From the IMG/VR virus record IMGVR_UViG_3300043410_001892, positions 62,001-126,000 of that record: a DNA stretch of 64,000 nt; one strand, 5' to 3'. The position numbers and the translations under genes are program-made. The notes under the pieces are model-generated. The model was given only the letters and a program-made list of their open reading frames with translations, was not told where the DNA came from and did no database searches. This document shows positions 43,968-62,860 of this stretch, one piece after another (position 1 is the first letter of the stretch; each line of letters begins with the position of its first letter).

Positions 43968-46900
43968 TTATATAATTGTTAAACTACTTATTACGCGAAC
44001 TGAAATTGTATCAGTAGCTGCTGCAGCTTGGGCAAGAATTCTTACATTTCCGCTATTAATATCACAGGTAAATGTTGCTAACATAGCACCACCTGATACT
44101 GTTGATATATCACCATATTCTACCATATATGCATTTGTTCCATTATGCAATACAAGTATTTCTGCAACTTGATATGTATTCAAATTTGATCCAGAACTTG
44201 CTGTACAATTAGCTTGTACTATGAACTTAGCACTTCTATATGTTGTCGCTGAAAATGATTTAATAGTAGTAGGAGTAGTTGTAATTCCAGTTACAACTGT
44301 ACCTTGTACTTCCAGATCAGTTTTAATTACTACTGAATTTACAAAAGTAGCAAGGCCATTCCCGTCAATTGTTAATCTTGTAGTAGCACTTTGTGTAATA
44401 TCACCTGATGTTCCAGGAGCTCCTGTTTTAATTATAAAGTTACCAGTGGTACCTGTTCCTGTTGCTAAACCTGGAGTAATTGTAAAATCACTTGCGGAAA
44501 TATTAGTTCCAACTGCATTTTCACCTTTAAGGGTTGCAGCAACTGGTGTTGCACTTGCTTCGCTACTACCTAATGTAACCGTTTTATTTCTTAATAATAA
44601 TGTATTGATTTTTTCAATAGTTCCAACACGCGGTGACGATGACAATGTAATTATTGTTGCTATTTTAACAGTAAATGACGATGATGAACTACCTGCACTT
44701 GTCACAGGCCATGTTCCGTCTAAGTTAGCAATGCCTGATGAAGCTATTGTTACTTGATCACCTGCTTTAATACCTAAACTTGTATTGGTATGTGCAAAAA
44801 CAACGGTTGTTAATGAAGTAAGATCAGTTGAAATTGCGTTGCTAAGATACACCGATGTTGCATCAATACCTGTTACAAGTGTATTTGATGGTATACCTGC
44901 TGCAGATTGAACTAATTGTCCAATTACAATTCCAGTTGTACCTGAAAATGTTAATTTTGTACTTGAGCTTGTGGCTGCTGTGAATAGAGCAAATCCAGTT
45001 CCGCCTGTATATACAGTACCAACACCTGCGACCGTGCTTAATGTAGTACCAGTATTTGCATACGTAAATGTTGTTGTATTAACTACCGTTACTACTGATA
45101 AATTTAATCCATTAAATGTTGTATTGTTACATACAATCGTAACAGTATCACCAGAAGTTAATCCATGTGCAGTTGAAGTAACAATAGTTGCAATATTGCT
45201 GCCATTTCTTGCAACAGTTGAAATTACTAATGCTGATGATATAACTGCACTAATTGAAGTTGTAGCACTACCTGATGTGGTATAATTCTTAACGATTGTA
45301 GTAAATGATCTAGTATTTGAACTTGCACCAATTACTACACTGCTTGCAGATCCACCTACATTTATTGATAATGCATTAGTGTTGAATACATTTGCAGTAC
45401 CTGTGGAAACAGTTTGTATTTCTCCAGAATTAGTTTTAACTATAGTTGCTAATGTTAATGAATCTGCCCAGTATGGCAATGAACCATTACTGCTTAAAAT
45501 TGTATTTGCTGGGCCAATTGCTAATTTACTAAGTGAAGATGCATTATTAGCATAGAGTAAATCGCCTGCTGTATAACCAGTTAAACCAGTACCACCTTTA
45601 TCTACTGGTATTGAACCAGTAAAGTTAGCTGGATCTAAGAAGTATGATGAATCATAAGTATCAAGTGTACCTGCATCAACAACACCGGCTTTAATAAACA
45701 CACGCCCAGCGGTATTTCCAGTACCAACATCAAATTGCAAGACGTTAAATTGTGCTACACCCATAGTTGAATAATCACTATTATCAGTTGGGAAAGTTGC
45801 TTTTGCAATATCCATTGTAACTGCACCGTAGTACGGTGATACACCAGTTCCGCCAAGTGTTATTATAGATGTGTTAGATTTTAAACTGGCAACAGCAGTT
45901 GCCCAAGATGAATCACCTCGTAAATATGTACTTGAATTTGCAGTTCCAGAACTTGCTAATCGACTAGTTGAAATTGTTCCAGAAACGATGTTACTTGCAT
46001 CAACACCTGATGTAGTTAAAAGTCCCCAGTTTGATAAATTTTTACCACTAGTATTTGAGAACCCAATTATTTGTACTTGATCATGAATTAACCAATAAGT
46101 GTTTGAACCGGTTGAACTAAAATCAACTGCTGCAATAGTAGAACCTGATACACTTACTAACGAATCTGCTCTATAAAAATGTAAAGTAAATGAATTAGTA
46201 GTAACTGATCCAATAAAGAATGTTTGTCTATCAGTTATTTGTATAATAGATCCAGATAACAAATAAGACGGTAACGTTGATCCTGTAATCGTTACAGCAT
46301 CACCTGTTGCTAATCCATGACTTGCAACATATATTCTGTTGTTAGTGGTATTAACTGTACTAATTGTTAAAGTGTGGCTACCTGTTGAACTTGTACCTAA
46401 TGTTACATACGTAGCACCATTGTATTCAGTTGATAATCTAAATGTATTAGCCGATAGCACTATAATATAATACGGTGTAACAATAGATAAATTACCAATT
46501 GCAGGATTTACACCTGGGCTATATATAACTGGGTCACCATTTGATAATCCATGTGAGTTAATTGTGATTATATTATTAACATAATCAACTGCTGATGCAG
46601 CATTAAATGTTTTTGTTATAGTAGTACTAACAGTTATTGGTAACCAAGAACTATTGTTATCAGTAACAAAATCTGGTGAATTTGAAGATCCAGTAAACTG
46701 CCCACCTGTCATATTATTGATATACAGTCTAGTTTCAACTGTTGATACTGTTATACTAAATCCAGAACCAACCGGTAATGATGCTGATAATGTATTGCCA
46801 ATTCCGTAACCTGTACCTGCATATACTAAATCAACTGCGGTAACTGCTCCACCTGTTACTGTAATATTTGCTAATGCGCCAGACCCTGCACCGCCTGTAA

Positions 46901-49900
46901 GTGCAACACGAGAGTAAGATCCATTAGTGTATAATGATCCACCTGATATTGTTAGATTGTTTACAACAACTACCATTCCTCTGCGCACTTCATATACTTC
47001 GCCTTGTGCTTGAGAACTTGCTGCAGTGATTACAGAATTTACAGTTCCAGTTTCAGATACTGGGGTAATAAATGTTAATGCTGCCGTGCTTGTTGATGTC
47101 ACTGACGATGTTGTTGGAAAAGTAACAGTAAAGGTACGTGGACTTGCAGACATGTTAACTGCAGAAATAATAGATCCAAGAGGTAACCCGCCACCAAACA
47201 CATAATCATTTACATTTATAGTTCCGGATAATGCAGCACTTGCTACTGTTCCAGTTGTAGTTGATGCATTTGATGCTGCATTGATAGTTGCTGTAGCAGT
47301 AGTAGTTGCTGATGCAGTAGTTGCAGTATCAGTATTTGGATAACTAAACTTCGTTGTTGTTAAAACAGTAACATACGGTGAAGTGTTATACGATGTCAAC
47401 GTGGTTGCAGTAACCTTAACTTGATTATTTGTAACTAAATTATGAGCTGCAGTTGTGATCACATAAGCAATATTGTTATATCGTATTACTGAGCTGATAG
47501 TTGCATTTGTATAGGTGTACGTACCGTTGTATGGAATTACTAAGTATTGATTAGTTGATGAATCTCTTAATACGTTTGTATCATTTGCTTCAACTGCGGC
47601 GCTAACTGCAGAACAATAAACTGAAGTATTTGTTGTGCTTGGTGTTGCATCTCCGCCAATTGTTAGTATATGTGCGCTGTTAGTATCAAATGATACGCTA
47701 AAAGTTTCATATTGACTTGCAATTACTACAGTTGTACTGTTCGTAACATCACCTTTAATGTAACCAGTTGCTCCACTTGTATCTTGTGTAACTAATGCAA
47801 AATCTAAAGCAGTAATTGGTAGGCTTAACGTAATAGTAACTGTTTGGAATTTTTCAGTACAAGTGTCGCCTGCTATAAAACTAACAGACGGAACATCTTC
47901 GTATGCAGTTAACCGTGAATGATAACCTAATCTAATAAGTGCAGTTGGTGCTCGTTGTGCCGGAATCAAATCATTATTAATTTGTCCAGCCGAGTTAAGT
48001 TGAACAACTGCACCTGGTACTGCGTTTGTGCTAACTGATTTATCAATAAATGATCCTAATCGAGTTTTAAGATAAGTCCACATAGCAAGCTGTGTGCTTA
48101 ATTTATTATTAGCTGGTCCACTGATTTCGTTTTCACCTAATCCAATATCGCTGCTAATTGCATCAATTGAAATATCACTTAATGCTAATTTTAATACATT
48201 TAACTGGCTAACTGTAACTGTATTTTTAAATACGATATTACCTGTTCTGTTGTAAGCAGTAATAAAGTTACCAACTTGGAAGTCACCTAATTCGTTAGTT
48301 CCTGATGAGTAAACTCGTCCTGCGTTCTCTTCAAATTGTTGGAAAGCAGGGTAACCTTGTCCACCGTTAACTGGTAATGCATTATAGTCAATACCAGAAC
48401 CTGCATATTCCCATGTATGACCTGATGAGTTAACAATACTTGGTCTATGGAAATAAACTTTCTTACCTGGTAATGAGTTAATATTGTTTAATGATCCATC
48501 TAACAATGATGGCATTACTGTAAATGTTGCACCATATAAGTCACTTCTTAATGTTACAGAAGTAACACTAATTGCTGGACTAAACACATCTGAACCAGCT
48601 TTAGTTATAGTTGATCCAGCTGCAAATAATTTTCTAATTGGATTGTTATAAATGGTAACAACATTGATTGCAACTACTAATGTATTTTCTCCATCAAAGC
48701 TATAAACGTTTGCACTATTTGGTTGTCCAGTTGTTACACCTTCAAGTTTTTGTCCAGGAACAAATGTATAGGTATTGTTATTAAGAACAATAGTTTGGAA
48801 TACATGATGTGTTTCTATTACATCATCAACAAATAATTCGTAGTCGTTTTTAACGATTGAATGTAAACCGGTACTAGTGCGTGTAACATTAAGTAATAAT
48901 GATAAACTATTATCATGTGCCAATTTAAATTGTGTAGTGTTCAAAAATACTACATAGTATTGGCTACCTGTAAACATACCACCAAGCGGTACTTGATTAT
49001 TTGTATTGTAAACAACCGCATCACCATTTACAAATCCATGTGGACTGCTTGTTGTGAAGATATCATTTACTATATCAATTTCAGTTGCAGCATTAAATGT
49101 CACTTCTAAGTAACTTGGTGATCTTGTTTTATAATTTGAAGTAAGATCAAGTGGTCCAAATTGTGTAGAAATATAATCAGTTACAAATGTTTTGATTGCA
49201 TCTTTATTAGTTTGTAAAATTGTACTTTGAACTACTAAATTCGTATCTTCAACCCAACCTACACCTGGTTCAAATACTGATGGTTCAGTCCCAGTGCTAA
49301 CCATTATGCGTAACTCTTCAAGTCTTGCAACAACAAATGCAGTTGCATCTACTGACCCTGGATTACCACTAATGTATTGCCCATTACCAGCTCCGTATCT
49401 TAGTGCAACATAGTTAGATATTTCAGTTTGACTTGCACCTTTATTAGAAACTAAGTTGCTGTTTTGAGTAGTTAAGTTTGAACTAACCCATGATGTACTT
49501 GGAGAAATAACAGTTGGTTCAACACCTGTACTAACCATTACACGCAATTCTTCTAAACGAGCAACTGCAAACGTAACTGCATCTGATGAAGCAGCAGTTC
49601 CACTAATTACTTGTGTTGCACTACCAGTAACTGAAGTTATATAAGTTGTAACTGCAGTTTGACTTGTTGATTTATTTGTAACTAGTGTACTATTTTGAGT
49701 AGTTAAGTTTGAACTAACCCAAGTAGTGCTAGGCGAAATAACACTTGGTTCAGTTCCGGCACTAACCATTACACGTAATTCTTCTAAACGAGCTACTGTA
49801 AAAGTAACTGCATCAGTAGAACCTGCATTTCCGCTTACTACTTGAGTTGTTACATTTCCAGTTGATTTAGTCCAAGATGTATTATTAGTTAGAATGCTTC

Positions 49901-52900
49901 CAATGATTGCTTTTAGTCTTACATAAACTGCAGTCAATGCAGTTTGTTGATCACCTACTTCAACTAGTGTGCCTGTTTGTTGATTTTTATATAATCTAGC
50001 ACATACTGCAGTTTCTAAGTTGCCACCATATACTAAATCATAACGTATGGCATCAACAATATAACCTATATCACGAGTACATAATGATTTTTGAGTTTGT
50101 GTAAACCCAGACCAAAGTGTGTTATAATTTGTGTTTAAGTACGCAGTTACTTCGTCTTGAATAAATGCTTTATTTGCATAAAGTAATCGGGCTGCATCTG
50201 AAAAACCAGTTAAAATGTTAGATGGTTCAGGCAAAACTACCGCAGGAACTACACTTAAACCATTGTTGATTATATTGATAATTGTGTTTAAACTGTTAGT
50301 AACTGATGTTGCAGCAGGTGCATATCCGCTAACTTGTGTAGCTAAGTAATCTCTCAAATAAGTAAATGCATCAACTGTGATTGCTTTTTCAGTACTTAAT
50401 AAGTTAGCTGATTGAGCAGTATAATAGCTCATACCAGCTTTAATAGATCTAAAGTTAGATCCAAACATCATATCATATCGCAACGCATCGATAACAAATC
50501 CAACATCTCGCTGACATAAAGATGAGTCATAAACAAATGCACTTGTTGTCCAAGATGTATTATTGGTTAAAATATTGCCAATAATTGCTTTTAATCTTGC
50601 GTATACCGCAGTAACAGCAGTTAGTTGGAGTGCAGGTTCAACTAATACACCAGTTTTTTGATTTTTATATAATCTAGCACATACTGAAGTTTCTAAGTTA
50701 CCGCCGTAAATTAAGTCATAACGTATGGCATCAACAATATAACCCATATCGCGCTTACATAATAATTTTTGAGCAGGTGTTAAACCTAACCAAGTTGACG
50801 TGTAGTTAGCCAGTAAATACCCACTTACTTCGTCTTGTATAAATGCCTTGTTAGCATTGATTATACGAGCTGCGTTTGAGAAACTTGCAACGATGTTAGA
50901 TGGTTCAGGTAATGTAATAGTAGGAACAGCACTTAAACCAGTATTGATAATACTAATAATAGTGTTCATATTATCAGTTACTGATGTTGCTGCAGCTGAG
51001 TAACCACTAACTTGTGCAGCAATATAATCTCTTAAGTGTGTAAATGCATCAATTGACGCAGCTTTTTCATCACCGACTACTGCAGATGCTTGGGCAGTAT
51101 AATAGCTCATACCTGCTTTAATAGATCTAAAGTTAGATCCAAACATCATATCATAACGAACTGCATCAATAATAAAACCAACATCTCGTTGACACAGTGT
51201 TGGATCATATGCAACTGATGATTTAGTCCAAGATGTATTATTAGTTAGAATATTTCCAATAATTGCTTTTAATCTTGCGTATACCGCAGTTACTGCCGCT
51301 TGTTCTGATGAATCTTCAACTAACACTCCAGTTAACTGATTTTTATATAACCGTGCTGCTACCGCAGTTTCTAAGTTGCCACCGTATATTAAGTCATACC
51401 GTATTGCATCAACAACATAGCCCATATCACGTTTACATAATGTGCGTTGATTATCAGTTAAACTAGTCCATAATGATTGGTAATTTGCATATAAGTAAGC
51501 AGTTACTTCGTCTTGAATGAACGATTTATTAGCATAAAGTAGTCGAGCTGCATCTGAAAAACCTGATAATAACGTAGGTGGTTCTGGAAGTACAGCAGTA
51601 GGAACAGCACTTAACCCATTAGTAATAATATTGATAATGGTATTCATGTTATTGACTACAGAAGTACCAGCAAGTGGGTCACCATTTACTGCGTTTGCTA
51701 TATAATCTCTTAAGAATACATACGCTGCAATGGTTGCATCTTTTTCAGATCCAATTACATTTGATGATTGTGCAGTGTAGTAACTCATACCTGCTTTAAT
51801 AGATCTAAAGTTAGATCCAAACATCATATCATATCGAATTGCATCAATAATAAAACCAACATCTCGTTGGCAGATATCAACATCATAAGTAAAGTTAGCT
51901 GTATTGCTGTATACTCGAATAATATATTGTTGTACAGGACCATCTGGTCTAGTAAAACCAATAACGGTTAACGTTTGGTTAACTCCTGAGTAACCAACTT
52001 CAGTAACAATACCTCTATCAAATGTAAATGAAGTAGGTGAAAACCCTGACGATCTAAGAGCATATATACCAAAGTTAGTAGCAGAATTAGTAATAGACGC
52101 ATAACCGCCGCTTTGTGTATACACACCATTTAATGCAAACAGTTGGAAACATGATACTAATTGAACGTAAGCTTCGTTAACAACACGCCATGCAGTACCA
52201 CCAAATAAGATCATTGTAAACGCTGCAGCAACCATTGACTTACATTGTACTGGAACAGCACCGGTTGGATTAACTTCAACCTCTAATAAGCTAACTGGAA
52301 CGTTAGGGTTAGCAATCTTTCCACCATCAATGTATGCTCCGTTACCACCTAAGAAGCTAAGAGCTGTACAGTTTTGAATATACGGTGATAATGTCATTAA
52401 TGGTTTAGTTGTAGGTAAGTTAATATACCCACTACGATCGGTGTTTGTATCAAAAACATCGTCAAATGCAACAGCATAGTCCCATGTGTATGATGCAATC
52501 CCATTTGCATCAACACCATCTCTAAATGTAAATTCAGAAAAGTAACAACCATTTCTAACTCTAAATAAGTCTTTATTTGCGTTTAATGGTCGGAAGATAC
52601 ATGAACGCAATGCTGCACCAATAACACTTACGTTATCTGGTATAATAATTGGGTTATCTTCAATATATTCACCAGCAGCTACGTTGACTACTACTCTTGT
52701 ACCGTTTGGTGCTTTTACTGAGTTGTAAACAAGTCCTGATGCAATTTGCAAACCTCGTTTAAGTGTTCTTACTGGAGAAGTAATACCGTCATTAGTATCA
52801 CTACCTTTAGTGGCTGAAACGTAAATGCAGTTACCTCCAAAGGTATCAGAGTCAGTAAATGCTAAATTTCCATTACCATCAGTTGATATTATTTGTCCTG

Positions 52901-53483
52901 CTAACCCTGTACTTGAAGGAAGTGTTAATGTATAATCAGCAGCTAAGTTAGCTGGTGATCTAAGTCCAATAAAGTTTACACCGTTAATAGTTGATTCAAA
53001 GAATTTAACTGACCCACGGTTTGTAACTGACACAGATGAAGCTGATGCATCACCTATTGTTGGTGAAATCAGTACAGGATTGTTAGAAAATACAACTTTA
53101 CCTGTGCCTGTTTCATCGGTAAGAATGCTTGCAAGTTCTTCAGATGAAGTTGCAGTAAATGCTGATAACTTATCTTCTAAGTAAGCAGCAGTGCCGCCTG
53201 TTCTAAACGTAACAGTTGAACTATCAGTACCAGAAAATGTTAAAGTATTGGTTACAGATAGAGTTTTACCACCAGTTAATGTCAAAGTTGCATCTGATGT
53301 AGGCATAGTGAATGCAATCTTATTAATAGTTGTTGCAGTTGCAATTCCTAAGTCTGGAGTAATCAATGCTGGATTAGTTGATAGAACTACCGCACCAGTA
53401 CCTGTTGAAATAGTTACACCAGTACCTCCGTGGATAACCGGAAGTGTTCCTCCTTTTAGAATGCTTGAAAGAGTTTTTGACAT
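43968..53483 (-). CDS. Giant multidomain tail fibre/spike protein (beta-helix, phycobiliprotein-like repeats, small beta modules)
   Basis: IYVSATKGSDTNDG...VAAGEYIED pectin-lyase-like start; six CxRD repeats; YY(V/I)..F(K/R)L modules; C-terminal YRSAKFIVQ..EILVLHNG..EYG domain. Confidence 0.8.
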   Translation of the reverse strand: MSKTLSSILKGGTLPVIHGGTGVTISTGTGAVVLSTNPALITPDLGIATATTINKIAFTMPTSDATLTLTGGKTLSVTNTLTFSGTDSSTVTFRTGGTAAYLEDKLSAFTATSSEELASILTDETGTGKVVFSNNPVLISPTIGDASASSVSVTNRGSVKFFESTINGVNFIGLRSPANLAADYTLTLPSSTGLAGQIISTDGNGNLAFTDSDTFGGNCIYVSATKGSDTNDGITSPVRTLKRGLQIASGLVYNSVKAPNGTRVVVNVAAGEYIEDNPIIIPDNVSVIGAALRSCIFRPLNANKDLFRVRNGCYFSEFTFRDGVDANGIASYTWDYAVAFDDVFDTNTDRSGYINLPTTKPLMTLSPYIQNCTALSFLGGNGAYIDGGKIANPNVPVSLLEVEVNPTGAVPVQCKSMVAAAFTMILFGGTAWRVVNEAYVQLVSCFQLFALNGVYTQSGGYASITNSATNFGIYALRSSGFSPTSFTFDRGIVTEVGYSGVNQTLTVIGFTRPDGPVQQYIIRVYSNTANFTYDVDICQRDVGFIIDAIRYDMMFGSNFRSIKAGMSYYTAQSSNVIGSEKDATIAAYVFLRDYIANAVNGDPLAGTSVVNNMNTIINIITNGLSAVPTAVLPEPPTLLSGFSDAARLLYANKSFIQDEVTAYLYANYQSLWTSLTDNQRTLCKRDMGYVVDAIRYDLIYGGNLETAVAARLYKNQLTGVLVEDSSEQAAVTAVYARLKAIIGNILTNNTSWTKSSVAYDPTLCQRDVGFIIDAVRYDMMFGSNFRSIKAGMSYYTAQASAVVGDEKAASIDAFTHLRDYIAAQVSGYSAAATSVTDNMNTIISIINTGLSAVPTITLPEPSNIVASFSNAARIINANKAFIQDEVSGYLLANYTSTWLGLTPAQKLLCKRDMGYIVDAIRYDLIYGGNLETSVCARLYKNQKTGVLVEPALQLTAVTAVYARLKAIIGNILTNNTSWTTSAFVYDSSLCQRDVGFVIDALRYDMMFGSNFRSIKAGMSYYTAQSANLLSTEKAITVDAFTYLRDYLATQVSGYAPAATSVTNSLNTIINIINNGLSVVPAVVLPEPSNILTGFSDAARLLYANKAFIQDEVTAYLNTNYNTLWSGFTQTQKSLCTRDIGYIVDAIRYDLVYGGNLETAVCARLYKNQQTGTLVEVGDQQTALTAVYVRLKAIIGSILTNNTSWTKSTGNVTTQVVSGNAGSTDAVTFTVARLEELRVMVSAGTEPSVISPSTTWVSSNLTTQNSTLVTNKSTSQTAVTTYITSVTGSATQVISGTAASSDAVTFAVARLEELRVMVSTGVEPTVISPSTSWVSSNLTTQNSNLVSNKGASQTEISNYVALRYGAGNGQYISGNPGSVDATAFVVARLEELRIMVSTGTEPSVFEPGVGWVEDTNLVVQSTILQTNKDAIKTFVTDYISTQFGPLDLTSNYKTRSPSYLEVTFNAATEIDIVNDIFTTSSPHGFVNGDAVVYNTNNQVPLGGMFTGSQYYVVFLNTTQFKLAHDNSLSLLLNVTRTSTGLHSIVKNDYELFVDDVIETHHVFQTIVLNNNTYTFVPGQKLEGVTTGQPNSANVYSFDGENTLVVAINVVTIYNNPIRKLFAAGSTITKAGSDVFSPAISVTSVTLRSDLYGATFTVMPSLLDGSLNNINSLPGKKVYFHRPSIVNSSGHTWEYAGSGIDYNALPVNGGQGYPAFQQFEENAGRVYSSGTNELGDFQVGNFITAYNRTGNIVFKNTVTVSQLNVLKLALSDISIDAISSDIGLGENEISGPANNKLSTQLAMWTYLKTRLGSFIDKSVSTNAVPGAVVQLNSAGQINNDLIPAQRAPTALIRLGYHSRLTAYEDVPSVSFIAGDTCTEKFQTVTITLSLPITALDFALVTQDTSGATGYIKGDVTNSTTVVIASQYETFSVSFDTNSAHILTIGGDATPSTTNTSVYCSAVSAAVEANDTNVLRDSSTNQYLVIPYNGTYTYTNATISSVIRYNNIAYVITTAAHNLVTNNQVKVTATTLTSYNTSPYVTVLTTTKFSYPNTDTATTASATTTATATINAASNASTTTGTVASAALSGTINVNDYVFGGGLPLGSIISAVNMSASPRTFTVTFPTTSSVTSTSTAALTFITPVSETGTVNSVITAASSQAQGEVYEVRRGMVVVVNNLTISGGSLYTNGSYSRVALTGGAGSGALANITVTGGAVTAVDLVYAGTGYGIGNTLSASLPVGSGFSITVSTVETRLYINNMTGGQFTGSSNSPDFVTDNNSSWLPITVSTTITKTFNAASAVDYVNNIITINSHGLSNGDPVIYSPGVNPAIGNLSIVTPYYIIVLSANTFRLSTEYNGATYVTLGTSSTGSHTLTISTVNTTNNRIYVASHGLATGDAVTITGSTLPSYLLSGSIIQITDRQTFFIGSVTTNSFTLHFYRADSLVSVSGSTIAAVDFSSTGSNTYWLIHDQVQIIGFSNTSGKNLSNWGLLTTSGVDASNIVSGTISTSRLASSGTANSSTYLRGDSSWATAVASLKSNTSIITLGGTGVSPYYGAVTMDIAKATFPTDNSDYSTMGVAQFNVLQFDVGTGNTAGRVFIKAGVVDAGTLDTYDSSYFLDPANFTGSIPVDKGGTGLTGYTAGDLLYANNASSLSKLAIGPANTILSSNGSLPYWADSLTLATIVKTNSGEIQTVSTGTANVFNTNALSINVGGSASSVVIGASSNTRSFTTIVKNYTTSGSATTSISAVISSALVISTVARNGSNIATIVTSTAHGLTSGDTVTIVCNNTTFNGLNLSVVTVVNTTTFTYANTGTTLSTVAGVGTVYTGGTGFALFTAATSSSTKLTFSGTTGIVIGQLVQSAAGIPSNTLVTGIDATSVYLSNAISTDLTSLTTVVFAHTNTSLGIKAGDQVTIASSGIANLDGTWPVTSAGSSSSSFTVKIATIITLSSSPRVGTIEKINTLLLRNKTVTLGSSEASATPVAATLKGENAVGTNISASDFTITPGLATGTGTTGNFIIKTGAPGTSGDITQSATTRLTIDGNGLATFVNSVVIKTDLEVQGTVVTGITTTPTTIKSFSATTYRSAKFIVQANCTASSGSNLNTYQVAEILVLHNGTNAYMVEYGDISTVSGGAMLATFTCDINSGNVRILAQAAAATDTISVRVISSLTII
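49140..51890 (-). repeat. Three 678-bp (226-aa) A+B repeats followed by three 77-78-aa repeats
   Basis: CxRD anchors at 51861/51183/50505 (A) and 51426/50748/50070 (B); ARLEELR anchors at 49777/49546/49312. Confidence 0.92.
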
Positions 53484-61114: not shown

Positions 61115-62860
61115 TCACATTGGAGGCGGTGCCATACCCGGTGCAGCAGGTGGCGGCATAGCTCCTGGCATACCGCCAGTCATTGGATCAGGTGGCATAA
61201 CCCCTGGAGGTGCTGCTAAGTTACTTGCAGAGTTCATATCTTGTTCCATACCAGCAGCTGATAGCCCAGCTCCGCGTAATTCTCCTGCTGCATCTGTGTG
61301 AGTTGGCTGGCCTTTACCTTGTTCTTCACCCCATAGACGTTCATTTTCTGCCATTTCGTCTTCAGTTAATCCTAAAAATCTTTTTAATGCAAAGCGTTTA
61401 CTCATATAAGGCACTGCTTGAATAGTATTAAAGGTATTAATTCTTTCGGAATCTAAACTTGCTTGACGTGCGCTTGCGAAGTTCATTGGTGGGTTAAATT
61501 GTAATTCAAATAAATTTGAATCAATATTTGCACCGCGCGAGTACATGTACATTTTAAATTCATTTGTAAATACATCTGTGATTAAACTTTGCAATCTTTC
61601 GCAGTATTTGTTAAATCTTAACTCTTGAATATACGCTGTACCAACACGCCCGTCTTGAAAACTTGATTGACTATCGTCTGCACCAGTTGGTAAGTAGCTA
61701 CTTGGAATACGTAAGCCACGGAATAACTTGTTTGTAAAGAATTTTAAGTCATCAATTTCACCTAAATTAGTTCCGCCCGGTAATGTTTCTACTTTAGAAC
61801 CGCGTCCTTCTGCAGTTTGTGGGAAGAAATAGTCTTCATTTATACTTAAAGGATTGTAAGCACTGTCAATAACGTTCTGTCCACCGCCACTTTGGCTTGG
61901 AATTCTACGTTGATGTATTTCATTTTTAACTCTTTCTACAAAGGCCATAGCTAAATGGCTTGGCATATTACCAACATCGATATGAAATACGCGTCTTTCT
62001 GGAGCTCTTTGTATACGATATATTAAAATAGCATCTTCTAATAGTTCTTTTTGCTTATAAACTTTAAAAATATTCTCTAATAAGCTGTTACCAAACGGAT
62101 AATTGTTATCTAACCCTTCAGAAAGTGATAAATGAACAACATGTTCTGCATCAACTGCGTGTTCTGTATCGCCTAAACCAAATCTTGAACCTGCTCCTGT
62201 ATTAGGATATGGACCAGATGCACCATATTGAGCACCAGATGTTCCCATATAACCTGCACCTGATGTCATTCCACCGCCGGATTGTTTTGGATTTATGTTA
62301 GGTGTAATGCGTGTTGCTACGAGATTTTCAAAGTTAGGAGCTAAATCTTTAATGATATACTGTACAGGCTTCTTTCCTTCGCTTTCATTTACGATTACAG
62401 TTTCAATTTTACTAGGATCAATCCAGTTCCATTTTTGATTTTCAGGATCTCTAATGAAAAAAGCATCACCGTATTTGAATACATTTCGAACAATCCTAAA
62501 GATTTTAGTATCAAAATTCTGTAATTTGTTCCATTGTTGTAGATATTCACCTAAAATTCTAATTTCTGAATTAGTTCCTCGATTATTCCAACGAACTGTA
62601 AATGGACTTTTACCATCTTTTAACTTTTGTGTACAAAATTCAGCGAGAATATCAAGTGCTGCGTTGATTTCAGGATCACTATCCATTACTTCGTACTGTT
62701 GATAACGATCAACACGATTAGGGCTTCCGGTATAAACATCTGGCAAGTAACTTGAATAATTTTTTCTTGCAGGTCCTGCTTTTGATGTTAAACCTAGTGT
62801 AGGAGTAGTATTAAGTTGTGTTGTACTGGATATTTCAGTGAAATGTTTACGCCAGGCCAT
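61115..62860 (-). CDS. gp20: Portal protein
   Basis: YRIQRAPERRVFHIDVGNMP, EDYFFP, TLPGGTNLGEIDDLKFF, IQELRFNKY. Confidence 0.97.
   Translation of the reverse strand: MAWRKHFTEISSTTQLNTTPTLGLTSKAGPARKNYSSYLPDVYTGSPNRVDRYQQYEVMDSDPEINAALDILAEFCTQKLKDGKSPFTVRWNNRGTNSEIRILGEYLQQWNKLQNFDTKIFRIVRNVFKYGDAFFIRDPENQKWNWIDPSKIETVIVNESEGKKPVQYIIKDLAPNFENLVATRITPNINPKQSGGGMTSGAGYMGTSGAQYGASGPYPNTGAGSRFGLGDTEHAVDAEHVVHLSLSEGLDNNYPFGNSLLENIFKVYKQKELLEDAILIYRIQRAPERRVFHIDVGNMPSHLAMAFVERVKNEIHQRRIPSQSGGGQNVIDSAYNPLSINEDYFFPQTAEGRGSKVETLPGGTNLGEIDDLKFFTNKLFRGLRIPSSYLPTGADDSQSSFQDGRVGTAYIQELRFNKYCERLQSLITDVFTNEFKMYMYSRGANIDSNLFELQFNPPMNFASARQASLDSERINTFNTIQAVPYMSKRFALKRFLGLTEDEMAENERLWGEEQGKGQPTHTDAAGELRGAGLSAAGMEQDMNSASNLAAPPGVMPPDPMTGGMPGAMPPPAAPGMAPPPM

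Follow-up and report, generated by a model that had tools for sequence, protein, structure and literature searches.

Results

Here, a giant tail-fibre protein of a 372-kb freshwater phage is found to carry three copies of a two-domain unit that appear to be inserted one inside the other like Russian dolls, and the domains are predicted relatives of the pigment-binding phycobiliproteins. The window analysed is a 64,000-nucleotide stretch of IMG/VR record IMGVR_UViG_3300043410_001892 (positions 62,001 to 126,000), and the array lies inside one minus-strand ORF encoding 3171 aa (P0001), in which residue i is the codon at 53484-3i to 53486-3i. The protein matches PHROG 5342 'tail fiber protein' (E 3.9e-199) and PHROG 4527 (1.3e-51), and it sits in a structural-gene block that includes a tail-fibre-like protein, a virion structural protein, sheath, major head and portal genes. 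Self-comparison and reading of the translation divide the region into modules A and B, of which the truncated B modules (Bn) retain only the N-half, and C units, as follows:

43968..53483 (-), whole gene, 3171 aa, giant tail-fibre protein
52026..52268 (-), residues 406-486 of the domain in front of the array
51444..51878 (-), A1 (536-680), complete module: CQRD N-half (globin helices E-F-G) plus C-half (helix H and the A/B helices used by B1)
51201..51443 (-), B1n (681-761), truncated module, CKRD N-half only, ending NNTSWTKSS and running into A2
50766..51200 (-), A2 (762-906), complete module, first inserted level
50523..50765 (-), B2n (907-987), truncated module
50088..50522 (-), A3 (988-1132), complete module, innermost level
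49848..50087 (-), B3n (1133-1212), the only B N-half that continues directly into a C unit
49617..49847 (-), C1 (1213-1289), helix H that completes B3 in the model, then A/B helices inferred to pack on A3
49383..49616 (-), C2 (1290-1367), helix H that completes B2 in the model, then A/B helices
49146..49382 (-), C3 (1368-1446), inferred to complete B1 (helix H) and perhaps A1 (A/B helices)

Repeat structure of the array

The units together span 49146-51878, confirming the initial annotation, which had placed the repeats at 49140-51890 with continuations spaced 231 and 234 bp. The three A+Bn units are 226 aa (678 bp) apart and are 71-72% identical in protein and 73-76% in DNA, while the C units are 77 and 78 codons apart; C1 and C2 are 68% identical, and C3 is 47-55% identical to them. 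Tandem Repeats Finder detects the C1/C2 pair (49424-49849, period 231, 81% matches), and BLAST E-values between units run from 1e-20 to 1e-45, far beyond chance. B1n and B2n end NNTSWTKSS and NNTSWTTSA and run into VAYDPTLCQRD and FVYDSSLCQRD, the start of the next A, whereas only B3n continues ...NNTSWTKSTGNVTTQVVSG... into C1.

An assembly artefact of a repetitive metagenomic region is very unlikely to explain the repeat order or copy number. Short contigs do break at repeat boundaries and none spans the whole region; however, the units differ by 24-27% in DNA and are easy to tell apart, and the listed short contigs of two runs from the likely source sample, at depths of roughly 70-450, tile nearly all of 48900-52100 with no differences and no conflicting joints. 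Furthermore, a contig from an unrelated sample in another study crosses the C2/C1 and C1/B3n junctions, and the same layout occurs in unrelated assemblies (the relatives P0034, P0425 and P0396, below).

Each truncated B is probably completed by a later C unit

The initial annotation had proposed the order A1-B1n-[A2-B2n-[A3-B3n-C1]-C2]-C3, with each unit inserted into the same loop of the previous B domain, and this reading is supported as the best and likely one, although the outermost pair (B1n-C3) was not modelled and rests on induction, orthology and mirrored trees. Alignment of A against Bn+C with hhalign gives a probability of 98.2% (E 3.6e-14) across both halves, indicating that Bn+C is a full module. 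In all 17 one-unit orthologs (P0122-P0138), Bn is joined directly to C through ...NNTSWTxSSGNxxTQ.... When each N-half is written as an opening bracket and each C-half as a closing bracket, HMMs of the two halves read P0001 as ()(()(()())); these orthologs are ()(), the two-unit P0034 is ()(()()), and the three-unit P0425 and four-unit P0396, which belong to a different subfamily, are ()(()(()())) and ()(()(()(()()))). The number of C units thus equals the number of truncated B units for 1, 2, 3, 3 and 4 units in two subfamilies, the outcome that the initial annotation had put forward as a check, although detection in distant relatives is noisier. Some relatives end with an unpaired N-half, so unpaired halves can exist, and a close relative in another run (X5) lacks exactly one C unit, its A+Bn count being unknown.

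Trees of the two kinds of unit mirror each other as the nest predicts. The A+Bn units, labelled X1 to X3, give (X1,(X2,X3)) with support 95/95 and 100/97, while the C units give (C1,C2) at 95/89, with C3 grouping with the C units of the one-unit orthologs P0122/P0123 (96/91). The three window units form one group apart from those of P0034, so the two expansions are independent. X2-X3 and C1-C2 have similar DNA identity (76% and 73%), but C3 is much more diverged from C1/C2 than X1 is from X2/X3, which does not fit a simple clock for whole-unit copying. Many relatives also carry a 410-460-aa foreign domain, or 2-6 modules, at the same point between the N and C halves; residues 406-486 of P0001, in front of the array, are homologous to this inserted domain (BLASTP against the insert of the relative P0036, 43% identity over 81 aa, E 7e-14).

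Direct-coupling analysis of 3408 contiguous modules, computed without shared residues, shows that the halves touch: 28 of the top 70 couplings link N and C halves, with an antiparallel ladder N60-C18, N56-C22, N53-C25, N49-C29. B-type N-halves prefer C units and A-type N-halves prefer A C-halves. Meanwhile, a coupling-energy partner test gave little support. With training on proteins without nests, the bracket-matched C half was top-ranked in only 11 of 131 nests (mean fractional rank 0.41, against 0.11 for contiguous pairs), and the nested pairing ranked 1 of 6, 1 of 2, 3 of 6 and 8 of 24 in the four stacked proteins. A complex prediction of A1-B1n-A2 against C2-h5+C3, folded without alignments, gave no verdict (score 0.27, mark 0.34) and is evidence neither way.

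Predicted structure of the nested domains

Two AlphaFold models were obtained, one of residues 905-1370 (model 1, pLDDT 87, pTM 0.73) and one of residues 757-1370, covering A2-B2n-A3-B3n-C1-C2 (model 2, pLDDT 89.8, pTM 0.66). Both are predictions whose alignments held only 9-13 rows with the same nested layout, and contacts are inferred from structural alignment ranges and pLDDT. A2 has pLDDT 71-95 (mostly above 80) in model 2 and A3 mostly 94-98. The contiguous domain A3-h5 + B3n + C1-h4 matches allophycocyanin (8or7_A, Z 14.8, rmsd 2.3 A over 124 residues); other matches include 5aqd_M (Z 14.3) and ApcE (4xxi_A, Z 12.6), and Foldseek gives probability 1.00 to many phycoerythrin beta chains. 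In model 2, single solved globin domains align to model residues 102-566 (8j2w_B, Z 12.4, rmsd 2.8 A, 120 aligned), 100-557, 108-570, 106-568 and 105-568, with 112-129 residues aligned at rmsd 2.8-4.0 A (8j2y_B, Z 10.2; 1x3k_A, Z 7.3). These ranges are A2-h5 + B2n + C2-h4, skipping about 325 inserted residues, so the C units are not independent domains there. The last-helix pLDDT of C2 falls from 62 to 37 in the model without A2 and is 88-94 with A2.

The fold unit is predicted to be a phycobiliprotein-like globin with shifted boundaries, a refinement of the initial annotation: each C unit gives its first helix (H) to a B domain and, by inference, its last helices (A/B) to an A domain, so that the returning chain probably completes B and A domains in turn. 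The crossed pairing (B1n-C1, B2n-C2, B3n-C3) was rejected, as B3n-C1 is contiguous and forms a domain and C2 completes B2 in the model.

It is unlikely that the region is instead two independent tandem arrays, with C units folding as free helical hairpins or a separate small domain array, B1n and B2n simply incomplete and the equal copy numbers a coincidence. At the DNA level the region is exactly two tandem arrays, with periods of 678 bp and 231-234 bp, each of which slippage or unequal crossing-over could make on its own, the coupling-energy test did not single out nested partners, and the X5 relative differs by exactly one C period. Nevertheless, the balanced counts across five architectures with independent expansions, the contiguity of Bn and C in one-unit orthologs, the position of the first C2 helix in the B2 globin domain in the model and the confidence of the last C2 helix only when A2 is present all argue against it, and the 226-aa unit ends in half a module of which the 77-aa unit is the other half.

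Completion between chains is also unlikely but cannot be excluded. Phage fibres are typically trimers, and domain swapping, in which each truncated B is completed by a C unit of a neighbouring chain to form an interlocked shaft, would equally need balanced numbers of halves. However, although no multimer model was obtained, the single-chain models close the B2 domain within one chain with high confidence (pLDDT 85-94, pTM 0.66-0.73), linkers at the junctions are short and regular, and one-unit orthologs have contiguous domains that need no swap.

Relationship to phycobiliproteins

All six modules of P0001 carry the CxRD motif (CQRD three times, CKRD twice, CTRD once), which is present in 4528 of 4714 N-halves (96%) from 428 giant phage proteins. 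The family profile hits 33 phycobiliprotein sequences out of 34 matches in the PDB (best E 1.2e-3), and the alignment places CxRD on the KCARDIGYY bilin site of phycocyanin alpha; the role of the motif is described in PMC10151467. Of 94 family segments, 30 hit Pfam PF00502 (best E 1.5e-8), but the window's own segment does not reach the threshold, Pfam on the whole protein gave nothing significant, and phmmer against the PDB gave only weak phycocyanin hits. A DNA search of the region against cultured phages found no match, a search for related loci with a single protein found only the source record and two one-unit relatives, and the protein atlas gave no usable hit.

Unexpectedly, the same genome encodes adjacent heme oxygenase and PcyA/PcyX-like bilin reductase genes, resembling known phage hemO-pcyX/pcyA cassettes (PMC11480375). 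The cassette lies about 170 kb from the fibre gene and no link between the two has been shown. Searches of the genome for the CpeT and CpeS lyase families found nothing. The nearest cultured relative of the reductase is in Pelagibacter phage Mosig (42% identity), which has the cassette but no such modules, while the positive control in this genome worked; the idea that every phage with a bilin cassette has such modules was therefore rejected.

Discussion

The data are best explained by six phycobiliprotein-like globin domains, predicted to be arranged as a three-level nest. The ancestral state, still seen in one-unit orthologs, is a pair of modules, A then B; a copy of the whole pair was probably inserted into the loop between helices G and H of B, and the same then probably happened again inside the inserted copy. 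An equivalent route is matched tandem expansion of the [A+Bn] and [C] pieces, kept only when balanced. The chain would run outward through A1, B1n, A2, B2n, A3 and B3n and return through C1, C2 and C3, with helix H of each C unit completing B3 and B2, as in the model, and by inference B1, and with the A/B helices inferred to pack on A3, A2 and perhaps A1. Entry and exit of the array would lie side by side, so the nest would be a projecting, dead-end branch of 2n domains that does not lengthen the through-path of the fibre, in contrast to the extensible stalk suggested in the initial annotation. What the branch does is not shown, but host-surface contact or spacing, or carrying a ligand, are the likely roles.

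Recursive insertion at a fixed point is unusual but has a precedent in the SI3 region of cyanobacterial RNA polymerase beta', until now the textbook case, where a six-level recursive insertion of sandwich-barrel hybrid motif domains is described in Prochlorococcus rpoC2 (PMC13114784). There, and by inference here, copies of one domain family are inserted into one another repeatedly, host domains are discontinuous in sequence and the chain runs out and back. Here, however, the predicted fold is an all-alpha globin rather than a beta-rich hybrid motif, the protein is a phage fibre, the inserted unit is a pair of domains, the returning segment seems to serve two domains in turn and depth varies from 1 to 4 among close relatives. 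The nest has arisen at least twice, making it a good system for studying how split domains stay foldable and how repeat proteins branch rather than only lengthen.

Phycobiliproteins and bilin biosynthesis-associated globins (BBAGs; PMC10151467) share the globin-like fold and the CxRD motif, but the phage modules are not free 160-aa subunits, with up to about 34 domains in one chain of a virion fibre protein, and no X-Y hairpin or alpha-beta assembly is evident. It is possible, though speculative and on present evidence doubtful, that the modules are working bilin-binding globins that, like BBAGs, attach a bilin to the conserved Cys by themselves, the bilin coming from the phage's own heme oxygenase and reductase. 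No bilin binding has been shown. The virion would then carry pigmented fibres, with six chromophore sites in this protein and more in a second, 4043-aa protein, nesting would pack more chromophore domains into a compact branch, and the unexplained bilin genes of phages that may infect non-photosynthetic hosts would have a target. A virion protein full of candidate bilin sites makes directly testable the question of why phages outside the classical cyanophages carry such cassettes (PMC11480375), and bears on the origin of phycobiliproteins from non-photosynthetic globins (PMC10151467).

The same module, with CxRDxGY, is found in giant tail-fibre proteins of relatives (PHROG 5342 and 4527), including the 'short tail fiber' of Synechococcus phages such as ACG-2014j, S-CAM4, S-RSM4 and S-PM2, at 22-28% identity in most of the cultured cyanophage matches (up to about 45% over short stretches). 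Most relatives string contiguous modules head to tail, ()()()..., with up to about 34 N-halves in one protein, whereas P0001, P0034, P0425 and P0396 stack them as nests.

Organisation of the repeat array

The repeats lie within a single minus-strand ORF whose 3171-aa product (P0001) matches phage tail-fibre families (PHROG 5342, E 3.9e-199) and which sits in a block of virion genes that includes sheath, major head protein and portal. The ORF belongs to a 372,173-bp virus record with direct terminal repeats, and run metadata point to a freshwater metagenome. The relevant parts of the gene are as follows:

43968-53483, minus strand: the complete tail-fibre-like ORF
53325-53417 and 53031-53123: internal repeat, residues 23-53 resembling residues 121-151 (52% identity)
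52026-52268: residues 406-486, part of the domain in front of the array
49146-51878: the array, comprising all six modules
48855-49100 and 46368-46610: internal repeat, residues 1462-1543 resembling residues 2292-2372 (27-39% identity)

Self-comparison and inspection of the translation confirmed the initial annotation, which had described truncated B units running straight into the next A unit and a continuation that appears three times in a row. Three 226-aa units follow one another, each consisting of a complete module A (about 145 aa, starting CQRDVGF) and a truncated module Bn (about 80 aa, starting C(K/T)RD(M/I)GY), and these are followed by three C units of 77-79 aa. B1n and B2n stop at NNTSWT(K/T)S and run directly into the next A, and only B3n continues into C1. 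The C units are 231 and 234 bp apart, and protein identity is 71-72% among the A+Bn units and 47-68% among the C units. Short contigs of the probable source runs tile nearly all of 48900-52100 without a single difference, and a contig from another study crosses the C2/C1/B3n junctions.

A profile of the three A modules aligns along its whole length to Bn+C (hhalign probability 98.2%, E 3.6e-14), indicating that Bn plus C is one module. HMMs built for the N-half and the C-half, and refined on 121 homologues, read P0001 as N C N N C N N C N C C C, or ()(()(()())) in bracket form. Furthermore, direct-coupling analysis of 3408 contiguous modules (effective number 2509) shows that the two halves touch, as 28 of the top 70 couplings link N and C, including an antiparallel helix ladder (N60-C18, N56-C22, N53-C25, N49-C29). 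Coupling energies also separate the two module types: A-type N-halves prefer A-type C-halves (250-290 against about 100-118), whereas B-type N-halves prefer the C units (290-351 against 107-133). However, a cleaner coupling test, trained only on proteins without nests, gave weak results. The matched C was top-ranked in only 11 of 131 nests (mean fractional rank 0.41, against 0.11 for contiguous controls) and the nested pairing ranked 1 of 6, 1 of 2, 3 of 6 and 8 of 24, therefore sequence couplings do not tell which C belongs to which Bn.

Conservation and independent expansion of the array

The initial annotation proposed checking whether homologues always have equal numbers of N-halves and C-halves. 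Orthologues that share the downstream part of the protein include 17 with one unit, ()(), in which Bn is joined directly to C, while P0034 (59% identity) has two units and two C units, ()(()()). A search of 1.84 billion representatives added a different subfamily with the same design, in which P0425 has three truncated modules and three C units and P0396 has four of each, ()(()(()(()()))). The counts therefore match for 1, 2, 3, 3 and 4 units. A relative at about 90-95% DNA identity, from an aquatic metagenome (run X5), has a contig that skips exactly 231 bp (49572 to 49804), i.e. one C unit, although that run has no coverage over 50184-51467 and its A+Bn count is unknown.

Phylogenetic trees place the three A+Bn units of P0001 in one group next to those of the one-unit orthologues P0122/P0123 and apart from the units of P0034, thus the expansions are independent. 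With the successive A+Bn units designated X1 to X3, their tree is (X1,(X2,X3)), with support of 95/95 and 100/97, whereas the C tree pairs C1 with C2 (95/89) and puts C3 with the single C unit of the orthologues (96/91), which is the mirror image that nesting predicts. X2-X3 and C1-C2 are about equally diverged in DNA (76% and 73%), but C3 is far more diverged from C1/C2 than X1 is from X2/X3, so the units have not evolved at one rate.

The junction between the halves is an insertion hot spot. Most relatives are plain head-to-tail arrays with up to about 34 N-halves, but many carry something between an N-half and its C-half: an unrelated domain of 410-460 aa, that domain plus two to six modules, or two or four modules alone, such as (()()). 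Part of the inserted domain (P0036 residues about 1228-1306) is homologous to the domain that precedes the array in P0001 (43% identity over 81 aa, E 7e-14); the same two parts occur in different topologies. Detection in distant relatives is noisy, and one group (P0037, P0045, P0046, P0050, P0057 and relatives) has runs of partial C-half hits in this position that are about 50-aa sub-repeats rather than full halves, each comprising the first helix of the C-half plus a ...IKVT strand, which is another way of elaborating the same loop.

Predicted fold and path of the chain

Structures were predicted for sub-nests for which alignment rows of the same layout exist. Model 1 covers residues 905-1370 (B2n-A3-B3n-C1-C2), was based on an alignment with 13 rows of the (()()) layout and 77 rows covering only the inner pair, and gave pLDDT 87.0 and pTM 0.73. 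Model 2 covers residues 757-1370, adding A2, and gave pLDDT 89.8 and pTM 0.66. The best solved matches to the predicted fold are phycobiliproteins, namely allophycocyanin 8or7_A (Z 14.8, rmsd 2.3 A over 124 residues), phycoerythrin 5aqd_M (Z 14.3) and the ApcE bilin domain (Z 12.6), followed by sensor globins at Z 11-12, and Foldseek gives probability 1.00 to many phycoerythrin beta chains. The matched stretch is not N-half plus C-half, but the last helices of the previous C-half (globin A/B), then the N-half (E, F, G), then the first helix of the next C-half (H). A C unit is therefore helix H of one domain followed by helices A/B of another.

In model 2, several single-domain structures align to a discontinuous range: 8j2w_B (Z 12.4, rmsd 2.8 A, 120 residues aligned over model residues 102-566), 8j2y_B (Z 10.2, 112 aligned over 100-557), a haemoglobin (129 aligned over 108-570) and two colicin domains (121 and 119 aligned over 106-568 and 105-568). 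These ranges are A2-h5 + B2n + C2-h4, with about 325 residues (A3, B3n, C1) skipped, and the score is close to that of the contiguous B3 domain. Meanwhile, the pLDDT of the last helix of C2 falls from 62 to 37 in model 1, where A2 is absent, but is 88-94 in model 2, where A2 is present more than 430 residues upstream.

These data suggest a path in which the chain runs out through the E-F-G cores and, on the way back, supplies A/B helices to A3, helix H to B2, A/B helices to A2, helix H to B1 and perhaps A/B helices to A1, thereby completing all six domains. Contacts are inferred from alignment ranges and model confidence, and the path through the outermost level, which lies outside both models, rests on induction, orthology and the mirrored trees. 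The A+B pair would then itself be an out-and-back unit with adjacent ends, which is what an insertable unit needs. The initial annotation viewed recursive insertion as a way to lengthen a fibre, but on this inference the array is a branch and not an in-line extension.

Domain insertion is common and recursive nesting is documented; the SI3 region of cyanobacterial RNA polymerase beta' has up to six levels (PMC13114784). The present case differs from SI3 in fold, in protein, in the insertion of a domain pair, in the inferred alternating completion on the return path and in its variable depth among close relatives.

Relationship to phycobiliproteins, and bilin-synthesis genes in the genome

The modules appear to belong to the phycobiliprotein family by sequence as well as by predicted fold. 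The family profile hits 34 PDB sequences, of which 33 are phycobiliproteins (best E 1.2e-3), and the alignment places the KCxRDxGY of the module on KCARDIGYY of phycocyanin alpha, the Cys84 bilin site. In addition, 30 of 94 family segments hit PF00502 (best E 1.5e-8). CxRD, the bilin-binding motif of phycobiliproteins and of some self-attaching BBAGs (PMC10151467), is kept in all six modules of the array and is present in 4528 of 4714 N-halves (96%) from 428 proteins.

The same genome encodes a bilin cassette and a second giant ORF, outside the window, in genome coordinates (G000:C1):

284890-285549: PcyA/PcyX-like ferredoxin-dependent bilin reductase
285659-286105: heme oxygenase, adjacent to the reductase
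about 224300-229400, plus strand: ORF of 4043 aa with the same CxRD globin modules

This is the kind of phage cassette whose purpose is unknown (PMC11480375). It is possible, albeit unlikely on present evidence, that the modules bind bilin. Against a simple link, no CpeT or CpeS lyase was found in the genome, and Pelagibacter phage Mosig (MT647606.1, 39650-40886), a phage of a heterotroph that carries the nearest cultured relative of the reductase (42% identity), also next to a heme oxygenase, has no such modules. The cassette (284890-286105) is flanked on one side by a RimK-like ATP-grasp gene and on the other by a small heat-shock protein gene and a DnaK C-terminal-like ORF.
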